Shown here piece by piece: positions 11,731 through 35,505 of a DNA stretch of 64,000 nt. The stretch's first letter is position 1. Every line of letters begins with the position of its first letter. A program made the translations under genes and the position numbers. The stretch covers positions 992,001 through 1,056,000 of the forward strand of contig JBLDXI010000013.1 of NCBI GenBank assembly GCA_047495785.1, written 5' to 3'. Under the pieces are notes generated by a model. The model was not told where the DNA came from, ran no database searches, and saw only the letters and a list, made by a program, of their open reading frames with translations. Source of the DNA: Lepidodermella squamata. Its lineage: Eukaryota > Animalia > Gastrotricha.

Positions 11731-12604
11731 CTATTTCTCCAATAATGAGCACTGTCCAGCGATACAGTTGCACCCTGAAGTTTTGCTGAAAGATCGAAAT
11801 CATAATTGATTCAAATAAAAAATAGTGGCGTAAAACTTACCAGCAGGAAACTATATCTCTAGCTGAATCGAAAGAAGTTTCACGAAGACTTTCCAGTGGA
11901 CAGTGAATTCTTCGTGCGCAGGTTTGAGTGACGTAACCAGTCGATGCACTAGATTCCAACTATAGATAATGGTGATTTAAGCGTCATGACATTCGGTATA
12001 TTGGAAAAAACCTTGCAAAATTGGCTTTCTCTGGGGCATCGGATGAGCTTGGAGCTCAAGCACTGTCCGGCGTTACCTTGGCAGCTAAAACAACGCAAAA
12101 ATGCCGAACGCTGACTACTGTTGCTGCTTCGAACAGCTGGTTCTGAAATAGGTTTAATTCCAGCACATTGTCGCTGCCCGAAACAATTGCAGCCATCGCT
12201 TGAGCTAGAAAATAAACGAAGCAGATGAGAACAGAAAATAATTATTTGCTACACGATACCAGCAAACTAACGACTGTCTTGTGGGATCTTGGTATCCACC
12301 TGCGTTTAAAAACGATTCAGGCGTGCAATGCACATCCCTTGCGCAAGACTGGGACACGCTATGAGGAGTAACTTCAAGGCGACAAAAAGTCGTTAGTGGC
12401 GAGCAATTTATCATCGACCCGCCGTAACAAGTGCCACTTGATCCATAACAATTGAAACAACGGATGGCATCTGAACAAATATATAGCATGGGGCATGGGC
12501 AGAAATTTGTATCAGGGAAGTCACCAACCATATTTAGCAGCGCAGAGCAGCTCCAAAAAAACAAGCTGCGATACAAGCTTTACTATTCTTCCGTAACAGA
12601 CCAT
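11731..12604 (-). CDS. Ly6/uPAR three-finger protein A, two tandem LU domains, no GPI tail (5 exons)
   Basis: Spliced: MVCYGRIVKLVSQLVFLELLCAAKY|DAIRCFNCYGSSGTC...SLVC|CSSDGCNCFGQRQC-linker-LRCFSCQGNAGQC...QFCK|LESSASTGYVTQTCARRIHC...SC|CKTSGCNCIAGQCSLLEK*. All introns GT-AG. Confidence 0.85.
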
Positions 12605-12942
12605 TTTACGATGCTGGAAAACGCGAATAAATTAATTGGAGCAGATCAAATGAAATCGACTATAAGCGAGGAAGCGTCTGAACGTGCGTTTGATTGCGAT
12701 TCGGATCACCGCTCATTTGCCCGCAACACAAATGGATTATATCCTATCACTTCACTACCGAGTCTCGCCATGGTCTGATGATGATTAATTATACGCGCCC
12801 AGGGTGATAATAAAAGAAATATTGGTATTCATGCGATTGCTTTAATAAATCCTGTTCGTATATTTTTCATCAACAAAATTTCACTATATTTTTAACTGTG
12901 TTGGTATCAAATTGAGTCAAGTGATAAAATGATTTATTCGTA

Positions 12943-13465
12943 TCAAAACAGCATCGCGAAGGCAACGGCAGCCACTGAAAGCGCGACAGGAGCGTAGAAA
13001 CGGAAACCAGCGCCAATAGCATCGCATTGTGTGCCTTGTATGGAGAAAAAAATTAGAAAGCAGCAGAAATATTTAATTCATCAACTTACCAACACAGTTG
13101 CAACCATCGTAGTTGCAGCAATTGCTAATATCGCCGATGGTACCGTCGGGTTGGGCGAAAGACCGGCCGATTTGACGCTTCGATAGTGGCGAGGCAGGGC
13201 ATTCAGCAGAGGTGGCGCAAGTCTGGACAGTGAGATCTGTGGCTTGCGTCCATTCAAGCTATGAGAGAAAAAAGACTCAAATACATGAGGTCATATATTT
13301 AACGCTTGAAACCTTGCAGAATTGTGCCGCTGCAGGGCAAGCCGTAATGATACCAGTCGCACAGTTCGCGGTTTTATCTTGGCACAAGAAGCATTGAATA
13401 GCCGAGGCGCTGCTAGCGAAGGCAGAGACCGCGAGAACAACGGCAAGAACGATTTTCGAGTGCAT
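12943..13465 (-). CDS. Ly6/uPAR three-finger protein B, predicted GPI-anchored (3 exons)
   Basis: MHSKIVLAVVLAVSAFASSASAIQCFLCQDKTANC...QFCK|LEWTQATDLTVQTCATSAECPASPLSKRQIG...SNCCNYDGCNCV|GTQCDAIGAGFRFYAPVALSVAAVAFAMLF*: signal peptide, CCxxDxCN, hydrophobic tail. Confidence 0.9.
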
Positions 13466-19181: not shown

Positions 19182-20103
19182 TTAGGAATGATGGTGATCA
19201 CTGTCCACCGAGGATATGTAAGTGCGCACCAAGCCTAGGAACTTGGCCCAAGTGCCGCAGATCGGGCAAGTTTCTTCTAGATGAACACTGCTGTTACTGT
19301 TGGTACCGAATTCCGGCTGAACGTTGCTATTGTTCACTGTCGTGCCGCTGCTGTCATTTCCACTTTTCGACTCGTCCAGCGTCGATAGTGCAGCTAAATT
19401 CGATGGCGAAGAAGCTTGTGACGGCGAGCGATGGCAATGAACCATCTGCAGATAGGAAATCATGACGCTTTCGAATGAATCCACACTCTCAACCATCATG
19501 TACGTCGTAACGCCCCACCGTTGCTTGTGCTGCTTTGTCAGCCTTGAAAGCACTTGCTTCAGCATTTGCGGTTTATCAGCTACGGCTAACGCCTGTTCGA
19601 TGCCATCTAGAAATTTAAATCCTTGGGCTGAAAATTGAAAATAATATTCATCATTATAAATTTGATGAACCTTAATCTTACTTGTGAGTATTTGTGTTTC
19701 TTCTTCTGGGTTCGAACTGTTCGGATTATTGTGCATGAAGGTTTGGAGAGCTTCGGGTACTCGAGCGACGATCCTAATCGAAGAAAAAGTGGGTCACAAA
19801 GAGCTATGAAATTGCCGAAATTTCCGAGACTTACATGTTCATGGCATCAGTTGCCAACTGTTTTTTAAGGCCTTCGCTGGATTTAATTTTCTCGTAGCTC
19901 TCGTGCAGGACTTTCATGTCGCTCTCTCCCATTCGGGCGCCAGAGGCGCCATGGGCACGTCCATTGACGCCATTCATCTGCGTCGCCACCATGGAATGAT
20001 AGCCATTCGACGTTACTTTCTCCTTGTCCTTCTTGGAGGAATGGTTTCGATGCGGGTCGTGTACGCGGATTGCAGCATTGTTCATTGAGCACTCATTTCC
20101 CAT
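19182..20103 (-). CDS. Globin 1 with N-acylation motif (MGNEC), distal E7 Gln, long GH insertion (3 exons)
   Basis: Exons 20103-19835, 19773-19682, 19627-19182. First intron is at the classic globin B12.2 position. Pro C2 and Phe CD1 (VPEALQTF), E helix LTTQGFKFLDGIEQAL, proximal His in LTKQHKQRWGV, H-helix Trp (GTWAKFLG). Confidence 0.88.
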
Positions 20104-21235
20104 AGTCTACCGTCTATGCAATGAACAAAAAGCTCGGTTATGTATCAAATTGGCCAAGCTACTCAGCTAGGTTTGCTTTTCAGAAAAGCTGAGTTGAAGT
20201 ATGTCAAATAAGTATGCTGCTTTCAAAGCGAGATCAAGGTGTATACTAGAAGAATATCCCAAGATGATTAATGTCGTGAAGTCGGATCGAGTTTCCAGGG
20301 GAAGCAATTTTTTCGAAAGAGAGGTCGATATGTTGAGCATTTTTTACCTTGCGCTATCAAATGGAAACGGCAGTGAGAATATAATAATAAAAGCGCGCAT
20401 AGATCAGATGCGCCTTTAATCCAACTCATCTATAGCTATTATAAAAATTGATAGGAAAACTGTCGAAATTAATATAGGCGAATTTGAATAGGAAATTTAA
20501 TCCACCTCTATATGAAATTGCTGATGTTCGAATCAGCAAGGAAGTAACGTTAGAACACTATATATTAGCATAGTTATAATACAATCCTCACATATACGAA
20601 CAGGAAAAGTCGATGTATGTAGATTTTTCAATACAAAAAGTAGAAGTGTACCAGTTAGTTGCAGAAGGAAATGATTAAAGTGAGAATTAATAACTCATTT
20701 CAGCATTCCCCATGTATGTCGGGATTATCGGCGAGGCCGCTGTGTCGAAGTATATTGCAGTTTTGATCTCTAAAATTATCCGACCTAATCACACCTGGCA
20801 TTTACCCTCCCACAATGCTAGCGCTTGATTTATTTCAGTTTAAATACAGAAAAATCTACAAAGAATTGAGTTTATTATTTGTTTTTAATTATGTAGTTAT
20901 CAGAGAGATTATTGCAAAAATCACCAAGTATAGCACAAATTGCGACATCTAAACATTCAAAATATATTTGATCATGTGATTGCGGCAACCTGAAATCGAT
21001 ATCTAGGTGCTTTCGTGCTAAGTGATCGCTGATGCGACGTCAGAATTTCCTTGCAATCGAGATTTTGAGTGTGCTCGACTTTTTACTGCTCGGGAATAAC
21101 AAGTGACGTTAATGATATAAGCATGACCAATATTATCGAAGCTTATTTCGATGATCACGACACTCGAATATGAATAAGAATAATGCGACGTATGTCAGTT
21201 GATTCCTCCAGAAAAATCACGAACGTAGAGTTATT

Positions 21236-21966
21236 CTAGACATCGATGGTAGCGTTGAAGAGGGCTTGCAGATGCCCGAAAAATCGTTCCCAAGTCGCGC
21301 AAGTTTTGCAACCCTCTTCGCCAATATATTTTGCCTCAAGTTTTGTTCCTGGTGCTCTTGCTTCCACGCCTTTGTTTCCCTGATCAGCTAGGATATTCGC
21401 TGGATTCGCTGCTGCAATTAGGCTAGATCGGTGGCCGTGCCTTACTTTCAAATAGGGGAATACCACACTTTTGAGGGCGTTCAAACCTTCGGCCATCATC
21501 GGCCCGTCAACATTGTGGCGCTGCTTATGTTTGGAAACCAACTGGTTAATAAAGTCTTGAAGCTGCAATGGTTGGTCGGCTACTTTTAAGGCCTGCTCAA
21601 TGCCGTCAAGTAGCAGTATTCCACGACCTGACAAAATTTATTAAAAATGGACTTCGCTGAGAATGAAAATATACGCATAAGATGTGAATTGTCGTCTCGC
21701 AACCTGGCATCGCTGTTGATTTTTTCCTTCGCACCTGCGACTGATGTCAGCAACCTATAAACCAAACAGGCTTTCGACCTTCATACTAAGATGGAAAAGG
21801 GCTCATACGTATCCACGCTCTTTTGCGCCAATCCACGCCTTTGACCACCAAACTTGATAGAATCGAAACTGTCGCGCATCAACTTAACCTCTTGTGGTGA
21901 AAACGTAACGTTGCTGAAATCTTCCTCAGCCTTCACAGCCATAGCTACCGTGCATTCGTTACCCAT
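21236..21966 (-). CDS. Globin 2, paralog of globin 1, MGNEC N-terminus, divergent distal pocket (3 exons)
   Basis: Exons 21966-21809, 21754-21675, 21627-21236, with the same intron positions and phases as globin 1. A helix FSPQEVKLMRDSFDSIK, LMRRGILLLDGIEQAL, proximal LVSKHKQRHNV, ATWERFFG. Confidence 0.85.
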
Positions 21967-22476: not shown

Positions 22477-23939
<1,463 letters not shown>

Positions 23940-26847: not shown

Positions 26848-28887
26848 TCACTCGAGCAGCTGGTAGGCGCGGGAGTTCAACGGGCCAGTCAGTGGCGAAT
26901 CGAAGCAGGCTGTCAGCACAGAGGTAGGTAACGGTAGTGGCGAAGCAGCCATATAGTTGTAGGAACTATCGCCAGCAGCTGTTTCATCGCCACCTTGTCC
27001 AGATCCGCCAACAAGGCCGCTGATTGGGTCGGCAAAGCAAACTAGATTTGCATCGTATTGATGGTGGTGGTGATGACGATCGCCGGTCGGCGGTAGGGCT
27101 TCGTAACTAGCATCGGGTGCCGAAAAGGCAGACAGATCTACCAATGAGCCGCAGGTGAAAAAATTGCCATCAGCTGGGATAATGCCAGAACCGTAGGGGT
27201 CATCAAGATCTGAACCGTTTGCGCCTGTTACTTGAGGGAACTCCATGCCAGGTAACGGGGAAATGAACTGGTTTGAGCAAGTCACGTCGCAGGATGGAAT
27301 GAACGACTGTTCCGCTGAATCCATGTAACTTCGATGCTGACCCGCCTTCCTTTGCCTTGAACTTGACCGATGAAGTCCGATTTCAATATTGCTAGCAACA
27401 TCATGGTCCTAGTGAGCAAACAGCTTAAAGAAAATTAATCTGAGAGCCAAGAAAATTACATTTATCAGGCTGGTATTTCGCAAGATAGTAGGTATCAACT
27501 GTCGATGAAGCCGACGGAGGTGCCGAACTAGACGAATTCGAAGCGGGTAATTTCTCCCTAGACCTGGCTGACAGAACGGGCACTCGAAGCACGGCAGGTC
27601 TTCTTTCATACTCGGATGGTCCAAAGATATATGGAGCTTTAGTAAAATAAAATAAGGCTTAGAGGATAATTAAACGCTATGAGCAGTACTTACTTTCATT
27701 TCAAGTTGCGACGGCAAAGCAAGCGAGCAAAAAGAGCAGAAGTATTGCTGATTTGTTGTTGATAACGATTCTTCCTGAGTAAATTGTTGATTGAGATCTG
27801 CCATAGGAATAACAGGTATTATTTGATTTGGATGCCGCCCTTGAGCGTGAATCAGCAAATCACTGTGATTTCTGAAGCCGACCCGACATAAATCACATCG
27901 GAATGGAAATTTGCTGTATGTTTCATCTGGCTTTGGTTCCAACGTAGCAACAATGCATTTGGGTCCAGGGCGTTTTTTCGTCGAGGTAACAGCTGTGCTG
28001 ACGCTAGCGAGCGCTTTTTTCGGATTAGATTCGGTTTTGGGTCCACTGCAAATTTCCTCGTGATCCTTAAGCTTATCCTTTCGCCGAAAAGCCTTTCCAC
28101 AGCGTGAACAATGACCAGCTGGGACATCTGAATGAGCACTTGCAGCATGCTTCCTCAGCCTCTCCATTCGAAGGAACTTCTTACCGCAGTCCGGACATGT
28201 GACATTCATGTCCACATGCGTTTGCCACACATGTCTTCTGGCTTTAGCGTAGGTATCAAATGATTTCAAACAGTGCGTGCACTGGAATTTTCCATCTTCA
28301 ATTCGATGGTTCGCATCGCCATGATCATTCAAGTCGGTGTAAGTTTTAGCCGAAAATTCGCACAAGTGGCATTTGAACCAGCTAGCTCTATCTATATCTG
28401 AGTGCGTTTTACGATGAATAGCCAACGCGGCGGGAGAAAGCGCGTAAAAATCACATATTGTGCACTTGTAAATAGGTTTATTGCCCAATGATTCACCGAC
28501 ATTGCCGCTTGGCTGTGAACTGATTGCATTTTCCTCTTCCATCTCAGTGTTGTCATCCATAACATCCATAGCAGCTGCAGATTCAGATATCCTCCCACAC
28601 CCATCGATATATCCTTCAACTCGACTGGTGTTCGTTCTCGAACTTGGGCCAGAAGCTACATGCTTAGTGATCATATGTATCTTGAGCTCCTTCGAATTGA
28701 AAACTTCGTTGCAATGAAAACATTGAATGGTAGGAGAGTCGGAAATTGATGAAGAGAAATCCGCCTCAGTGGATATCAATTCTACATCTCCATGAAAGGA
28801 TGTTGAAGCCATAAGCGTCTCGTTTGGCTCGTTGTTACGATCGACCAAGTTGCTAACACAATACTTGACGTTTCCGATATGTGGCAT
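26848..28887 (-). CDS. Multi-C2H2 zinc-finger protein (~9 fingers), 3 exons
   Basis: Repeated CxxC...HxxxH fingers (CTICDFY...HRKTH; CPDCGKKFLRMERLRKHAASAH; CSRCGKAF) and an acidic, Pro-rich C-terminus. Start codon uncertain (28887 or 28812). Confidence 0.85.
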
Positions 28888-28982
28888 CCAGATCGACCAC
28901 GATTGCAAAAAATGTCAAGAAAATATCATTTCTAAAGCAGATTAATTTTTGAACATTAGCAAGACGAAAATTGAATTCAAAA

Positions 28983-33418: not shown

Positions 33419-33602
33419 GCAAAAGTTATAACTGGACTGACGATTGAAGAGTTTGTTGAAGCTTAATTTTTCGTTTGCCTCACTGACTTATCGTAAGAAA
33501 ACATTCCACGTAATTGGTGATAAGCTCTCCTCCTGATTCCCCCTCGTGAATTGACTGAATAAATTGCTATTTGGTTCTAGATTTTTACTTAATAATCAAA
33601 AG

Positions 33603-35505
33603 ATGGACGTTGCCGAGCTTATGAAATTCAAGCCGAACCTTGTTGGTTCAGAGTCGACCAAAGAAAAGACAAAACAACCAAATGTGTCATCTCATCAGTC
33701 ACAGCCTCCGGCTTCAGCTCTTAGCTCGAAAAAGAGACACTCAAGGTTCGAAGAAGCTGATGATTTACCAACCGTTAAGTCTTCAAAAGACGCCGGTCCG
33801 TCAACTTCCTCCGGCAAAACTGAAGATCGCGATCGTTTATTGCGGCTGGTCGATGAGCTTCCCGATGCTGAACCTTTTGACGCTGTCGCCTTGAAGAAAT
33901 TAGTCCTTAAATTCGAAAAAATTGTTACGAAGAATCGCGAAATGCGTATCAAGCATCCGGAAGAGCCCCAAAAGTTTCTTGATTCTGAGATCGAGCTCAA
34001 TGATGTCATTCACGAGATGCATATAATTGCCACTGCTCCTGAACTATTCCCCATCATAATCGAACTAAACCTTGTTACATCAATCCTTCAACTTCTTTCG
34101 CATGAAAATGCTGATATTGCGATCGCAGCAGTTGATCTGCTGCAAGAACTGACCGACGTCGAGTCTTCCGATGAAGATGTTATCGAAATTCTGGAACGCT
34201 TCGTCAACGTTCTAACCGAACAGCAGCTTGTTGCACGTCTAGTTCAAAATGCAGACAGGCTGGACGAAACCGTTAAGGAGGAGGCTGAGTGTGTCCACAA
34301 TTCGATGGCAATCATCGAAAACTTGGTTGAAATGAAGCCGGAACTCGCGACTGATATTGCGAAGCAAGGTGTGATGGCCTGGTTGTTGAAGCGACTTCGA
34401 GTTAAGATGCCTTTTGACGCCAACAAATTGTACGCTAGTGAAATTCTTTCAATCCTCATGCATAACAATGACGAAACTCGTGAGTTGCTGGGTTCTCTTG
34501 ATGGTGTCGACATATTGCTACAACAACTGGCGGCCTATAAACGACACGACCCGACCTCAGCTGACGAAACTGAATTTATGGAGAACTTATTCAGCGCGCT
34601 GTGCTCGTGTTTGATGCTCAAGTCCAACAAGGACAGATTCCTTGCTGGCGAAGGATTACAGCTGATGAATTTGATGCTCCGCGAGAAGAAAATGTCGCGC
34701 ATCAGTGCGATCAAAGTTCTCGACTATTCAATGACTGGCCCGGATGGTGCTGATAATTGCAACAAATTCGTCGATATTCTCGGACTGCGAAGTATTTTCC
34801 CATTGCTGATGAAGCCTCCGAAGGCCCCGAAGAAGAAGGAAGCTGAGAGCACGACTGACGAAACCGAAGAACACATCTGCTCGATTTCGGCTGCCCTTCT
34901 TCGAAACACGACTGGAGCCGAACAGCGTGCTCGGTTGATGAATAAATTCGTGGAAAATAACCATGAGAAAGTGGAGCGTTTGCTCGAACTACACTTCAAA
35001 TATTCAGATAAACTGAAGGCAGCTGATGACCTTATTAACAAGGAAAAAGCGGTTCGTCAGAAATTTTTGATTAATTCTCTCTTTTGCATAATTTTTCTAC
35101 AGCTCTTGAAGAAACGCGGTGAACAAGTCGATGACGACCTTGAAGACGAATTCTACATGAGGCGATTAGATTCTGGCCTTTTCACTCTGCAATTAGTCGA
35201 TTACATGATCTGCGAAATTTGCGTCAGTGGCGAAGATTCGGTAAGCTCAACACTGAATTTGATTCGTCGTTTTGCAATTTTTTTGTGTCAGATTCGCCAA
35301 CGTGTTCTGGAAATGCTTAACGTTCGAGGTGATTCGGTTGACAGCATAAAACGAATTATGAAGGGTAACTTTCGTTGGTGAATACTTTTCTTTAGCTGAC
35401 CTCTCTATTATTCTAGAATATGCCTCAACTGTTGGTGATAATCTCGATCCAGAGCAGCGACGCGTTGAGCAAGACAGACTTCTGAATTTAATGAACAAGC
35501 TGTGA
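33603..35505 (+). CDS. CTNNBL1: Beta-catenin-like protein 1 (PRP19 complex)
   Basis: MDVAELMKFKP, LLSHENADIAIAAVDLLQELTD, FDANKLYASEILSIL, FLAGEGLQLMNLMLREKK, EFYMRRLDSGLFTLQLVDY; three short 3' introns. Confidence 0.96.

Follow-up and report, generated by a model that had tools for sequence, protein, structure and literature searches.

The gastrotrich Lepidodermella squamata carries a tandem pair of genes for very divergent globins in which Cys and His residues bracket a long, variable loop between helices G and H. This Cys/His cluster is predicted to bind, most likely, one tetrahedral Zn(II), which may be redox-sensitive; we regard this as the leading reading and consider its chances about even. 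The genes, here called A and B, lie on the minus strand of a window of 64,000 nucleotides (nt) that was analysed as a whole (contig JBLDXI010000013.1 of assembly GCA_047495785.1, positions 992,001 to 1,056,000). A diverged relative of the animal carries an orthologue of each gene and two further paralogues, C and D. The cluster consists of Cys or His residues at the end of helix G and a CxxC motif at the start of helix H, and the latter is kept in all six proteins.

Tandem globin genes and their Cys/His motifs

The cluster was noticed in a first-pass annotation of the window, which read HCH and CPIC in the product of gene A and HGH and CKTC in that of gene B, each CxxC being followed by x-T-W. 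Translation of the minus strand agrees with all of these motif positions (Table 1), and the spacer lengths given there between the last His and the first Cys, 54 amino acids (aa) in A and 40 aa in B, are exact. The annotation had also described the spacers as poorly conserved, and they are indeed only 21% identical between A and B, compared with 45% in helices E–G. The tandem motif observation is confirmed. When both proteins were shuffled, the pattern [HC]x[HC]-x(20,80)-CxxC occurred in just 0.5% (A) and 0.2% (B) of the shuffles. Gene A encodes four Cys in total and gene B three, and every one of them is located either in the cluster or in the N-terminal acylation-like signal described below. 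Besides A and B, which share 30% protein identity, no further member of the family was found within the 64-kb window.

The animal genome to which the window belongs has short introns and a G+C content of about 42%, and each of the two genes was modelled with three exons. Splicing was assessed with the contigs of a public run labelled as possibly RNA (X1), which match the window mostly at 99% or higher; the contigs of the likely source DNA run (X2) were used as an unspliced control. All four modelled introns are spliced out in X1 contigs, with GT..AG ends on the minus strand (19628-19681, 19774-19834, 21628-21674 and 21755-21808), and none of the four joints is present in X2 contigs. A spliced X1 contig is continuous across 19209-19354, which comprises the CxxC and the second half of spacer A. 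X1 contigs are likewise continuous across 21255-21354 and 21369-21472, which comprise nearly all of spacer B and the HGH, and they contain no joint inside either spacer. Both genes are expressed and the spacers are coding sequence; the X1 contigs are uninformative on expression levels and transcript ends. A normal corner between helices G and H (GH corner) in the mature protein, owing to a spacer that is an overlooked intron or to faulty gene models, is scarcely credible: the low complexity and poor conservation of the spacer speak for it and nothing else does, the X1 contigs that lack the four real introns cross these three intervals unbroken, and in two species the reading frame is kept through the spacers, although these are just 20-28% identical. 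The first-pass annotation had itself raised this possibility, which is contradicted by the unbroken spliced contigs over most of both spacers and was rejected on these RNA-like contigs.

The introns are 47-61 nt long and have acceptors of the TTTTCAG type. Four X1 contigs in and around gene B contain joints marked as lying on opposite strands (21041/21168, 21255/21362, 21561/21706 and 21563/21719), which may be assembly chimeras or antisense RNA. Between the two genes, at 21006-21093, the X2 contigs are split into several short pieces and their summed depth is doubled (216 vs about 100), which points to a small repeat or a heterozygous stretch. At position 19584 the spliced X1 contig has A where the window and the DNA run have G, and the DNA run deviates from the window at 19392 and 19780; these differences are probably strain or allele variants.

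Table 1. Positions of genes A and B and of their features in the window
Feature	Position	Strand	Description and basis
Gene A	20103-19182	minus	exons 20103-19835, 19773-19682, 19627-19182 (stop included); 268 aa globin
Gene A introns	19834-19774 (61 nt, B12.2); 19681-19628 (54 nt, E6.1)	minus	spliced model and X1 contigs
MGNECS N-terminus, gene A	20086-20103	minus	Gly2 and Ser6 fit N-myristoylation pattern, Cys5 candidate palmitoylation site; sequence
Proximal His F8, gene A	19527-19529	minus	context L-T-K-Q-H-K-Q-R-W-G-V; aligned with annelid chain F8
H-C-H, C-terminal end of helix G, gene A	19431-19439	minus	translation and model
Spacer, gene A	19269-19430	minus	54 aa, Ser/Asn-rich, predicted disordered; pLDDT <50 at exon-3 residues 67-115
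His five residues before first Cys, gene A	19281-19283	minus	also in A orthologue and relative C
C-P-I-C-G-T-W, predicted start of helix H, gene A	19248-19268 (CPIC 19257-19268)	minus	first Cys is predicted helix N-cap; translation and model
Gene B	21966-21236	minus	exons 21966-21809, 21754-21675, 21627-21236 (stop included); 209 aa paralogue
Gene B introns	21808-21755 (54 nt, B12.2); 21674-21628 (47 nt, E6.1)	minus	spliced model and X1 contigs
MGNECT N-terminus, gene B	21949-21966	minus	same acylation-like signal; sequence
Proximal His F8, gene B	21527-21529	minus	alignment
H-G-H, end of helix G, gene B	21431-21439	minus	identical in B orthologue P0002
Spacer, gene B	21311-21430	minus	40 aa; translation
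C-K-T-C-A-T-W, start of helix H, gene B	21290-21310 (CKTC 21299-21310)	minus	translation and alignment

A and B are very divergent globins. The gene A open reading frame (ORF), taken without helices A-B, scores 22.3 bits against the Pfam Globin family (PF00042), just above the cut-off of 22.0; exon 3 of gene B alone scores 15.9 bits and stays under it. The best sequence matches in the PDB are annelid giant-hemoglobin chains, aligned over helices E–G, and the His of L-x-x-Q-H-x-x-R-x-G-V coincides with the proximal His of these chains. Gene A shows the expected landmarks, namely Pro C2, Phe CD1 six residues further on, a Q-G-F-K-F segment that supplies Gln E7 and Phe E11, and His F8. Gene B keeps His F8 and has Arg at E7 and Ile at CD1 in place of the usual His/Gln and Phe, which makes its heme pocket unusual. 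Both substitutions are common to gene B (21627-21966) and its orthologue (L001:4122-4440), so this odd distal pocket is conserved across the two species. Exon 3 of gene A was the query of an exhaustive HMMER search in 1.8 billion representatives, and no named globin was among the matches at E ≤0.001. A feature search of the ESM Atlas returned weak globin leads (score 0.83), and its shape search gave no match. A c-type heme motif was considered for the CxxC and dropped, because no His follows it.

The intron positions can also be read against the globin fold. Intron 1 of A and B lies after the second base of a codon six residues upstream of C2, a site and phase that we take to be the classic B12.2 globin intron (beta-globin codon 30). 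Intron 2 lies at E6 in phase 1 in A, B and the A orthologue. It is absent in the B orthologue (L001:4300-4440, compared with window 21628-21674) and was therefore gained or lost after the two species split. The G7.0 intron is absent from A and B. Relative C seemingly lacks the B12.2 intron.

Structure prediction with AlphaFold covers contiguous pieces of the proteins: exon 3 of gene A, from E7 to the C-terminus, modelled with the six-sequence alignment, and a fragment of the B orthologue. The gene A model has a mean predicted local distance difference test (pLDDT) score of 68, with 85-90 across helices E–G and 88 in helix H. In exon-3 numbering it comprises helices E (2-13), F (19-37), G (41-64), a short helix (112-119) and H (121-146), and residues 67-115 are disordered, with pLDDT below 50. 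Helix G ends at H63-C64 with H65 just beyond, and appears to exceed its canonical 19 residues by about one turn. Helix H is capped at its N-terminus by Cys120 in the model, and its first turn contains Cys123. The model of the B-orthologue fragment has the same motif placement at lower confidence (mean pLDDT 64). Both partial chains thus place the two motifs where the first-pass annotation had put them, one closing helix G and the other opening helix H. In the globin fold these two points are joined by a corner of about five residues, and on this ground the motifs are taken to be probable neighbours in space.

Comparison of the models with known structures gave globin-like but statistically weak matches. 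About one quarter of the best 50 VIA-align rows for the gene A half model are globins or have the globin fold, including ranks 1-2. The matches include the RsbR N-domain (Z 7.9) and cytoglobin (Z 6.7, root-mean-square deviation 2.7 Å over 90 residues), together with globin-coupled sensors and hemoglobins of Lucina and of trematodes. The tool itself cautions that Z values in this range do not settle a match between helical proteins. Residue 1 of the model, which is E7, is aligned to cytoglobin residue 81, its E7. With Foldseek, most of the best 50 rows for this model are globins, all of them at E ≥1.3 and none significant. The B-orthologue fragment gave no clear fold match, and none of its Foldseek E-values was significant.

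All six family members start with MG..C (MGNECS, MGNECT, MGACSS, MGAECS, MGSACT and MGAVCF). Gly2, a small residue at position 6 and a nearby Cys form the pattern of N-terminal myristoylation and palmitoylation, and acylation of the MGNEC start is predicted, which would make A and B membrane-type globins. Such globins are known from other animals. GLB-12 of C. elegans is anchored to the membrane via Gly2 and Cys6 and acts in superoxide signalling (PMC4686822), and N-acylated globins are widespread, comprising globin X, X-like globins and many clades in Platynereis and C. elegans (PMC7771090).

Conservation of the cluster among relatives

The HMMER search returned six proteins at E ≤0.001. Three of the six are true relatives, and each is an unnamed ORF fragment in a metagenome assembly of ENA or Logan. 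The remaining three, long proteins with short, scattered matches, were taken for low-complexity noise. Word-index protein searches with the gene A ORF, with a six-sequence profile and with relative D found nothing beyond metagenome fragments, and a scan of JGI metagenomes with a profile of B and its orthologue found no relative. All three fragments come from one diverged relative, whose contigs carry four genes: the A orthologue, the B orthologue and the paralogues C and D. The first locus of this relative is syntenic with the window and contains a trypsin-like gene, the B orthologue and the A orthologue, the orthologues being 41-55% identical to A and B at the protein level. C and D are tandem paralogues at a second locus. 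The conservation set therefore comprises six proteins from two species, which represent four independent paralogue lineages.

Invariant columns are few in the alignment of the six sequences and consist only of the two CxxC Cys, the Trp three residues further on and a Phe. The motif C-x-x-C-x-[T/H]-W-x-x-F is kept in all six proteins, although they are only 16-40% identical to gene A. The partner residues at the end of helix G vary: HCH is found in A, CGQHH in the A orthologue, HGH in B and its orthologue, SHM in C, and a Cys followed ten residues later by CHC in D. A further His five residues before the first Cys of the CxxC (position −5) is present in A, the A orthologue and C, and not in the B type, whose helix G ends with two His. 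The candidate ligand sets are accordingly HCH + H + CC for A, HGH + CC for B, H + H + CC for C and C + CHC + CC for D, and each of the six members has four to six Cys/His in this corner when the end of helix G, position −5 and the CxxC are counted together. Elsewhere such residues are rare. Hardly any other Cys or His except the proximal His occurs in the E–G part upstream of the CxxC, and the spacers of A, B and their orthologues (40-59 residues) contain none beyond those of the cluster.

These results modify the first-pass annotation in two respects. The HxH that it considered conserved at the end of helix G holds for A and B and does not extend to the relatives with CGQHH, SHM and CHC. Nor is a fixed composition of the Cys2His2 site that it suggested supported, since this composition is not conserved across the six members. 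The spacer varies far more than the motifs that flank it. Its length ranges from 19 to 59 residues among the members, and its identity is 20% between A and its orthologue, compared with 51% in helices E–G, and 28% between B and its orthologue, compared with 67%.

Relative D (P0009, L004:10756-11673) has Ala at the position of the proximal His and keeps the MGAVC start, the CHC and a CxxC-S-H-W. It is probably a protein of the globin fold that has given up heme and not the Cys cluster, which is therefore maintained independently of heme ligation.

The genomic surroundings contain several further features. A trypsin-like serine protease gene adjoins gene B in both species (window 22668-23600; L001:2852-3430), and DNA matches at window 12382-13140 carry the conserved gene order past gene A. 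An intronless-looking ORF of 605 codons at 33564-35381 encodes a homologue of beta-catenin-like protein 1 (Pfam CTNNBL, E 9e-158), whereas the genes around it have introns. A minus-strand ORF at 27670-28908 encodes several C2H2 zinc fingers. Rfam gave no match anywhere in the window.

Possible functions of the cluster

We favour a tetrahedral Zn(II) site because a fixed CxxC at a helix start is combined with Cys/His partners that swap and shift while the total stays at four or more. Cys and His replace each other where helix G ends, and no member has fewer than four ligands, a pattern that a tetrahedral metal site would be expected to produce. The acylation signal, which implies a location in the cytosol, and the near absence of other Cys also favour zinc: an acylated cytosolic protein would face a reducing compartment, where a conserved Cys pair would more often be a metal ligand than a structural disulfide.

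According to the zinc reading, myristate and palmitate on the MGNEC signal would tether the globins to the cytosolic face of a membrane. The metal would bridge the base of the disordered loop, joining the extended end of helix G with the beginning of helix H, and would so hold the G-H hairpin together. Since two of the ligands form a CxxC, oxidants could expel the zinc and convert the pair into a disulfide, which would place a redox-sensitive element beside the heme pocket. Loss of the zinc would loosen the G-H hairpin, which forms one wall of the heme pocket, or would free the loop. As a wider and more tentative proposal, which we consider possible but rather more likely wrong than right, the proteins would form a class of membrane-tethered globins not described before, expanded in an animal lineage with little sampling, that carry a Zn(Cys/His)4 clasp with a redox-labile CxxC at the GH corner. 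Thiol or zinc status would control the G-H hairpin and thereby heme reactivity or the exposure of a disordered signalling loop, and the module would work even in a protein that lacks the heme ligand.

Several points weigh against the assignment of a zinc site. None of the zinc-binding family models matches the proteins. The positions of the ligands at the end of helix G are not fixed, and one member has a single His there. The comparison is limited to six sequences from two species, that is, to four independent paralogue lineages. The structure models cover only part of each protein at moderate mean pLDDT values (64 and 68), AlphaFold cannot place metals, and the presumed closeness of the ligands rests on the globin fold and these partial models. 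Finally, the acylation is predicted from sequence only.

An alternative that we regard as unlikely, though less so than the others, is a metal-free redox pair. The CxxC of helix H would cycle between dithiol and disulfide, the nearby His would tune the thiol pKa, and the protein would sense oxidants or relay oxidation at the membrane. Redox-active CxxC motifs typically sit at the N-terminus of a helix, and both models place the CxxC in this way, with the first Cys as N-cap and the second within the first turn. The CxxC alone is invariant, its His partners vary, and redox signalling involves acylated globins, GLB-12 of C. elegans among them (PMC4686822). The redox pair does not account for the additional Cys/His, at least two in every member, that occupy position −5 or the end of helix G and in which the two residue types replace each other. 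The helix-start CxxC is present, but the fold is globin-like and not that of thioredoxin, which lowers the case for membership of that family and not the case for redox chemistry.

The invariance of the CxxC alone would also suit a zinc site formed between molecules. Another chain or a partner protein would contribute its own CxxC or CxC/HxH to a pairing with the CxxC, which would cause dimerisation or docking at the membrane. Zinc sites of this kind are represented by the Rad50 zinc hook and the CD4-Lck zinc clasp. The cluster is located at an exposed corner beside a disordered loop in the gene A model, and the CHC or HCH combined with a CxxC recalls the CxC + CxxC clasp of dually acylated Lck. 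We nevertheless consider an intermolecular site improbable, as each chain already holds at least four ligands at two sites that the globin fold should unite.

We see an equally slim prospect that there is no special site at all, the Cys and His being kept for helix capping, packing or additional S-acylation and the loop being a tolerated insertion. C. elegans globins have long GH extensions without such a motif, and the metal in A and B is a prediction. The two invariant Cys at fixed spacing in proteins 16-40% identical to gene A argue against this, as do the near absence of other Cys and the compensating Cys/His at the partner site.

A redox-active metal centre that passes electrons to or from the heme, such as rubredoxin-like Fe, a Cys/His-ligated [2Fe-2S] cluster or Cu, is very improbable. 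The arrangement [H/C]x[H/C]-spacer-CxxC bears a loose likeness to the CxH...CxxH boxes of Rieske proteins. A role in electron transfer has been suggested for several acylated globins (PMC3106018). No Fe-S family matches, however, the ligand sets vary too much between the paralogues for a cluster site, and relative D is without a heme ligand and hence without an electron partner.

Comparison with described globins and zinc sites

Taken by itself, the long GH insertion has precedents. Six C. elegans globins have GH extensions of 17-40 aa (PMC2228317); those with a long GH region include GLB-17 (F49E2.4, 40 aa), GLB-21 (R102.9, 32 aa), GLB-12, GLB-2 and GLB-4. Like these proteins, A and B have a GH corner of tens of residues in an otherwise globin-like protein, and they resemble them also in belonging to a very divergent gene family with variable intron positions, which is a large one in C. 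elegans. Unlike A and B, the C. elegans globins have at most one Cys before the Trp of helix H and neither a CxxC nor an HxH partner, in their published alignment (PMC2576238); a CxxC before this Trp is absent from its rows for the 33 C. elegans globins and their relatives in parts 6-7 of 9 of supplement 2. No sequence relationship to the nematode long-GH globins was detected in the HMMER search.

Globin X genes have introns at B12.2, E10.2, G7.0 and H10.0. Unlike them, A and B share only the B12.2 intron of this set, and their second intron is at E6.1. The proteins are similar to globin X, X-like globins and the C. elegans globins GLB-12 and GLB-26 in being single-domain globins with an N-terminal signal of Gly2 and a nearby Cys. 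For this group, redox signalling or the handling of reactive oxygen species has been proposed instead of oxygen transport (Blank and Burmester 2012, as cited in PMC7771090; PMC4686822). The literature searched gave no mention of a Cys/His cluster at the GH corner in these globins.

Disulfide-regulated globins are the other obvious comparison. Neuroglobin has a disulfide in the CD loop and cytoglobin one between Cys38 and Cys83, and the redox state of the Cys alters heme coordination in both. These proteins resemble A and B in having a Cys pair in a globin and show redox-heme coupling of the kind proposed here. They differ in that their Cys are far apart in sequence and form no CxxC, and in having neither His partners nor an inserted loop.

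Among zinc sites, there is a likeness to the CD4/CD8-Lck clasp and to treble-clef sites with a CxxC at a helix start, in which a small Zn(Cys/His)4 centre is built from a CxC-like element and a CxxC; in Lck the clasp also lies beside a dually acylated N-terminus. The Lck and treble-clef sites are formed between chains or in small domains, whereas in A and B the two halves would lie in one globin domain with a disordered loop between them. A globin chain that binds Zn(II) by side chains outside the heme pocket has a precedent in the C1 hemoglobin of Riftia pachyptila, where A2 chains, which are extracellular, meet at an interface and coordinate the metal by His B12, B16 and G9; this site is not conserved among tubeworms (Flores et al. 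2005, as cited in PMC6862839). Unlike the Riftia site, the one proposed here would consist of Cys and His at the GH corner of a protein read as intracellular, and it is conserved across paralogues. The Riftia-type His triad is absent from gene A, where B12 is Met, B16 is Arg and none of B12, B16 and G9 is His.

Full-text literature searches for a CxxC or a zinc site in the GH region of globins returned nothing relevant. The suggestion of the first-pass annotation that this architecture is not among the described globins is consistent with these searches and with the nematode alignment rows that were covered, as the motif was found in neither. On this evidence the globin superfamily, the type of membrane signal and the type of loop expansion are known, and what is new is the Cys/His clasp. 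Should nothing bind to the cluster, A and B would amount to one more case of lineage-specific globins with a long GH loop. The globin fold is among the best studied, and redox control by pairs of Cys is under active study in neuroglobin, cytoglobin, globin X and GLB-12. A metal or redox clasp inside a membrane-anchored globin domain would, if true, represent a new coupling of thiol or zinc signalling to a heme protein, and its retention by a paralogue that has no proximal His would fit a portable module. The signature [H/C]x[H/C]...CxxC-x-[T/H]-W is simple and testable, and can be used to sort the globins of this genome.

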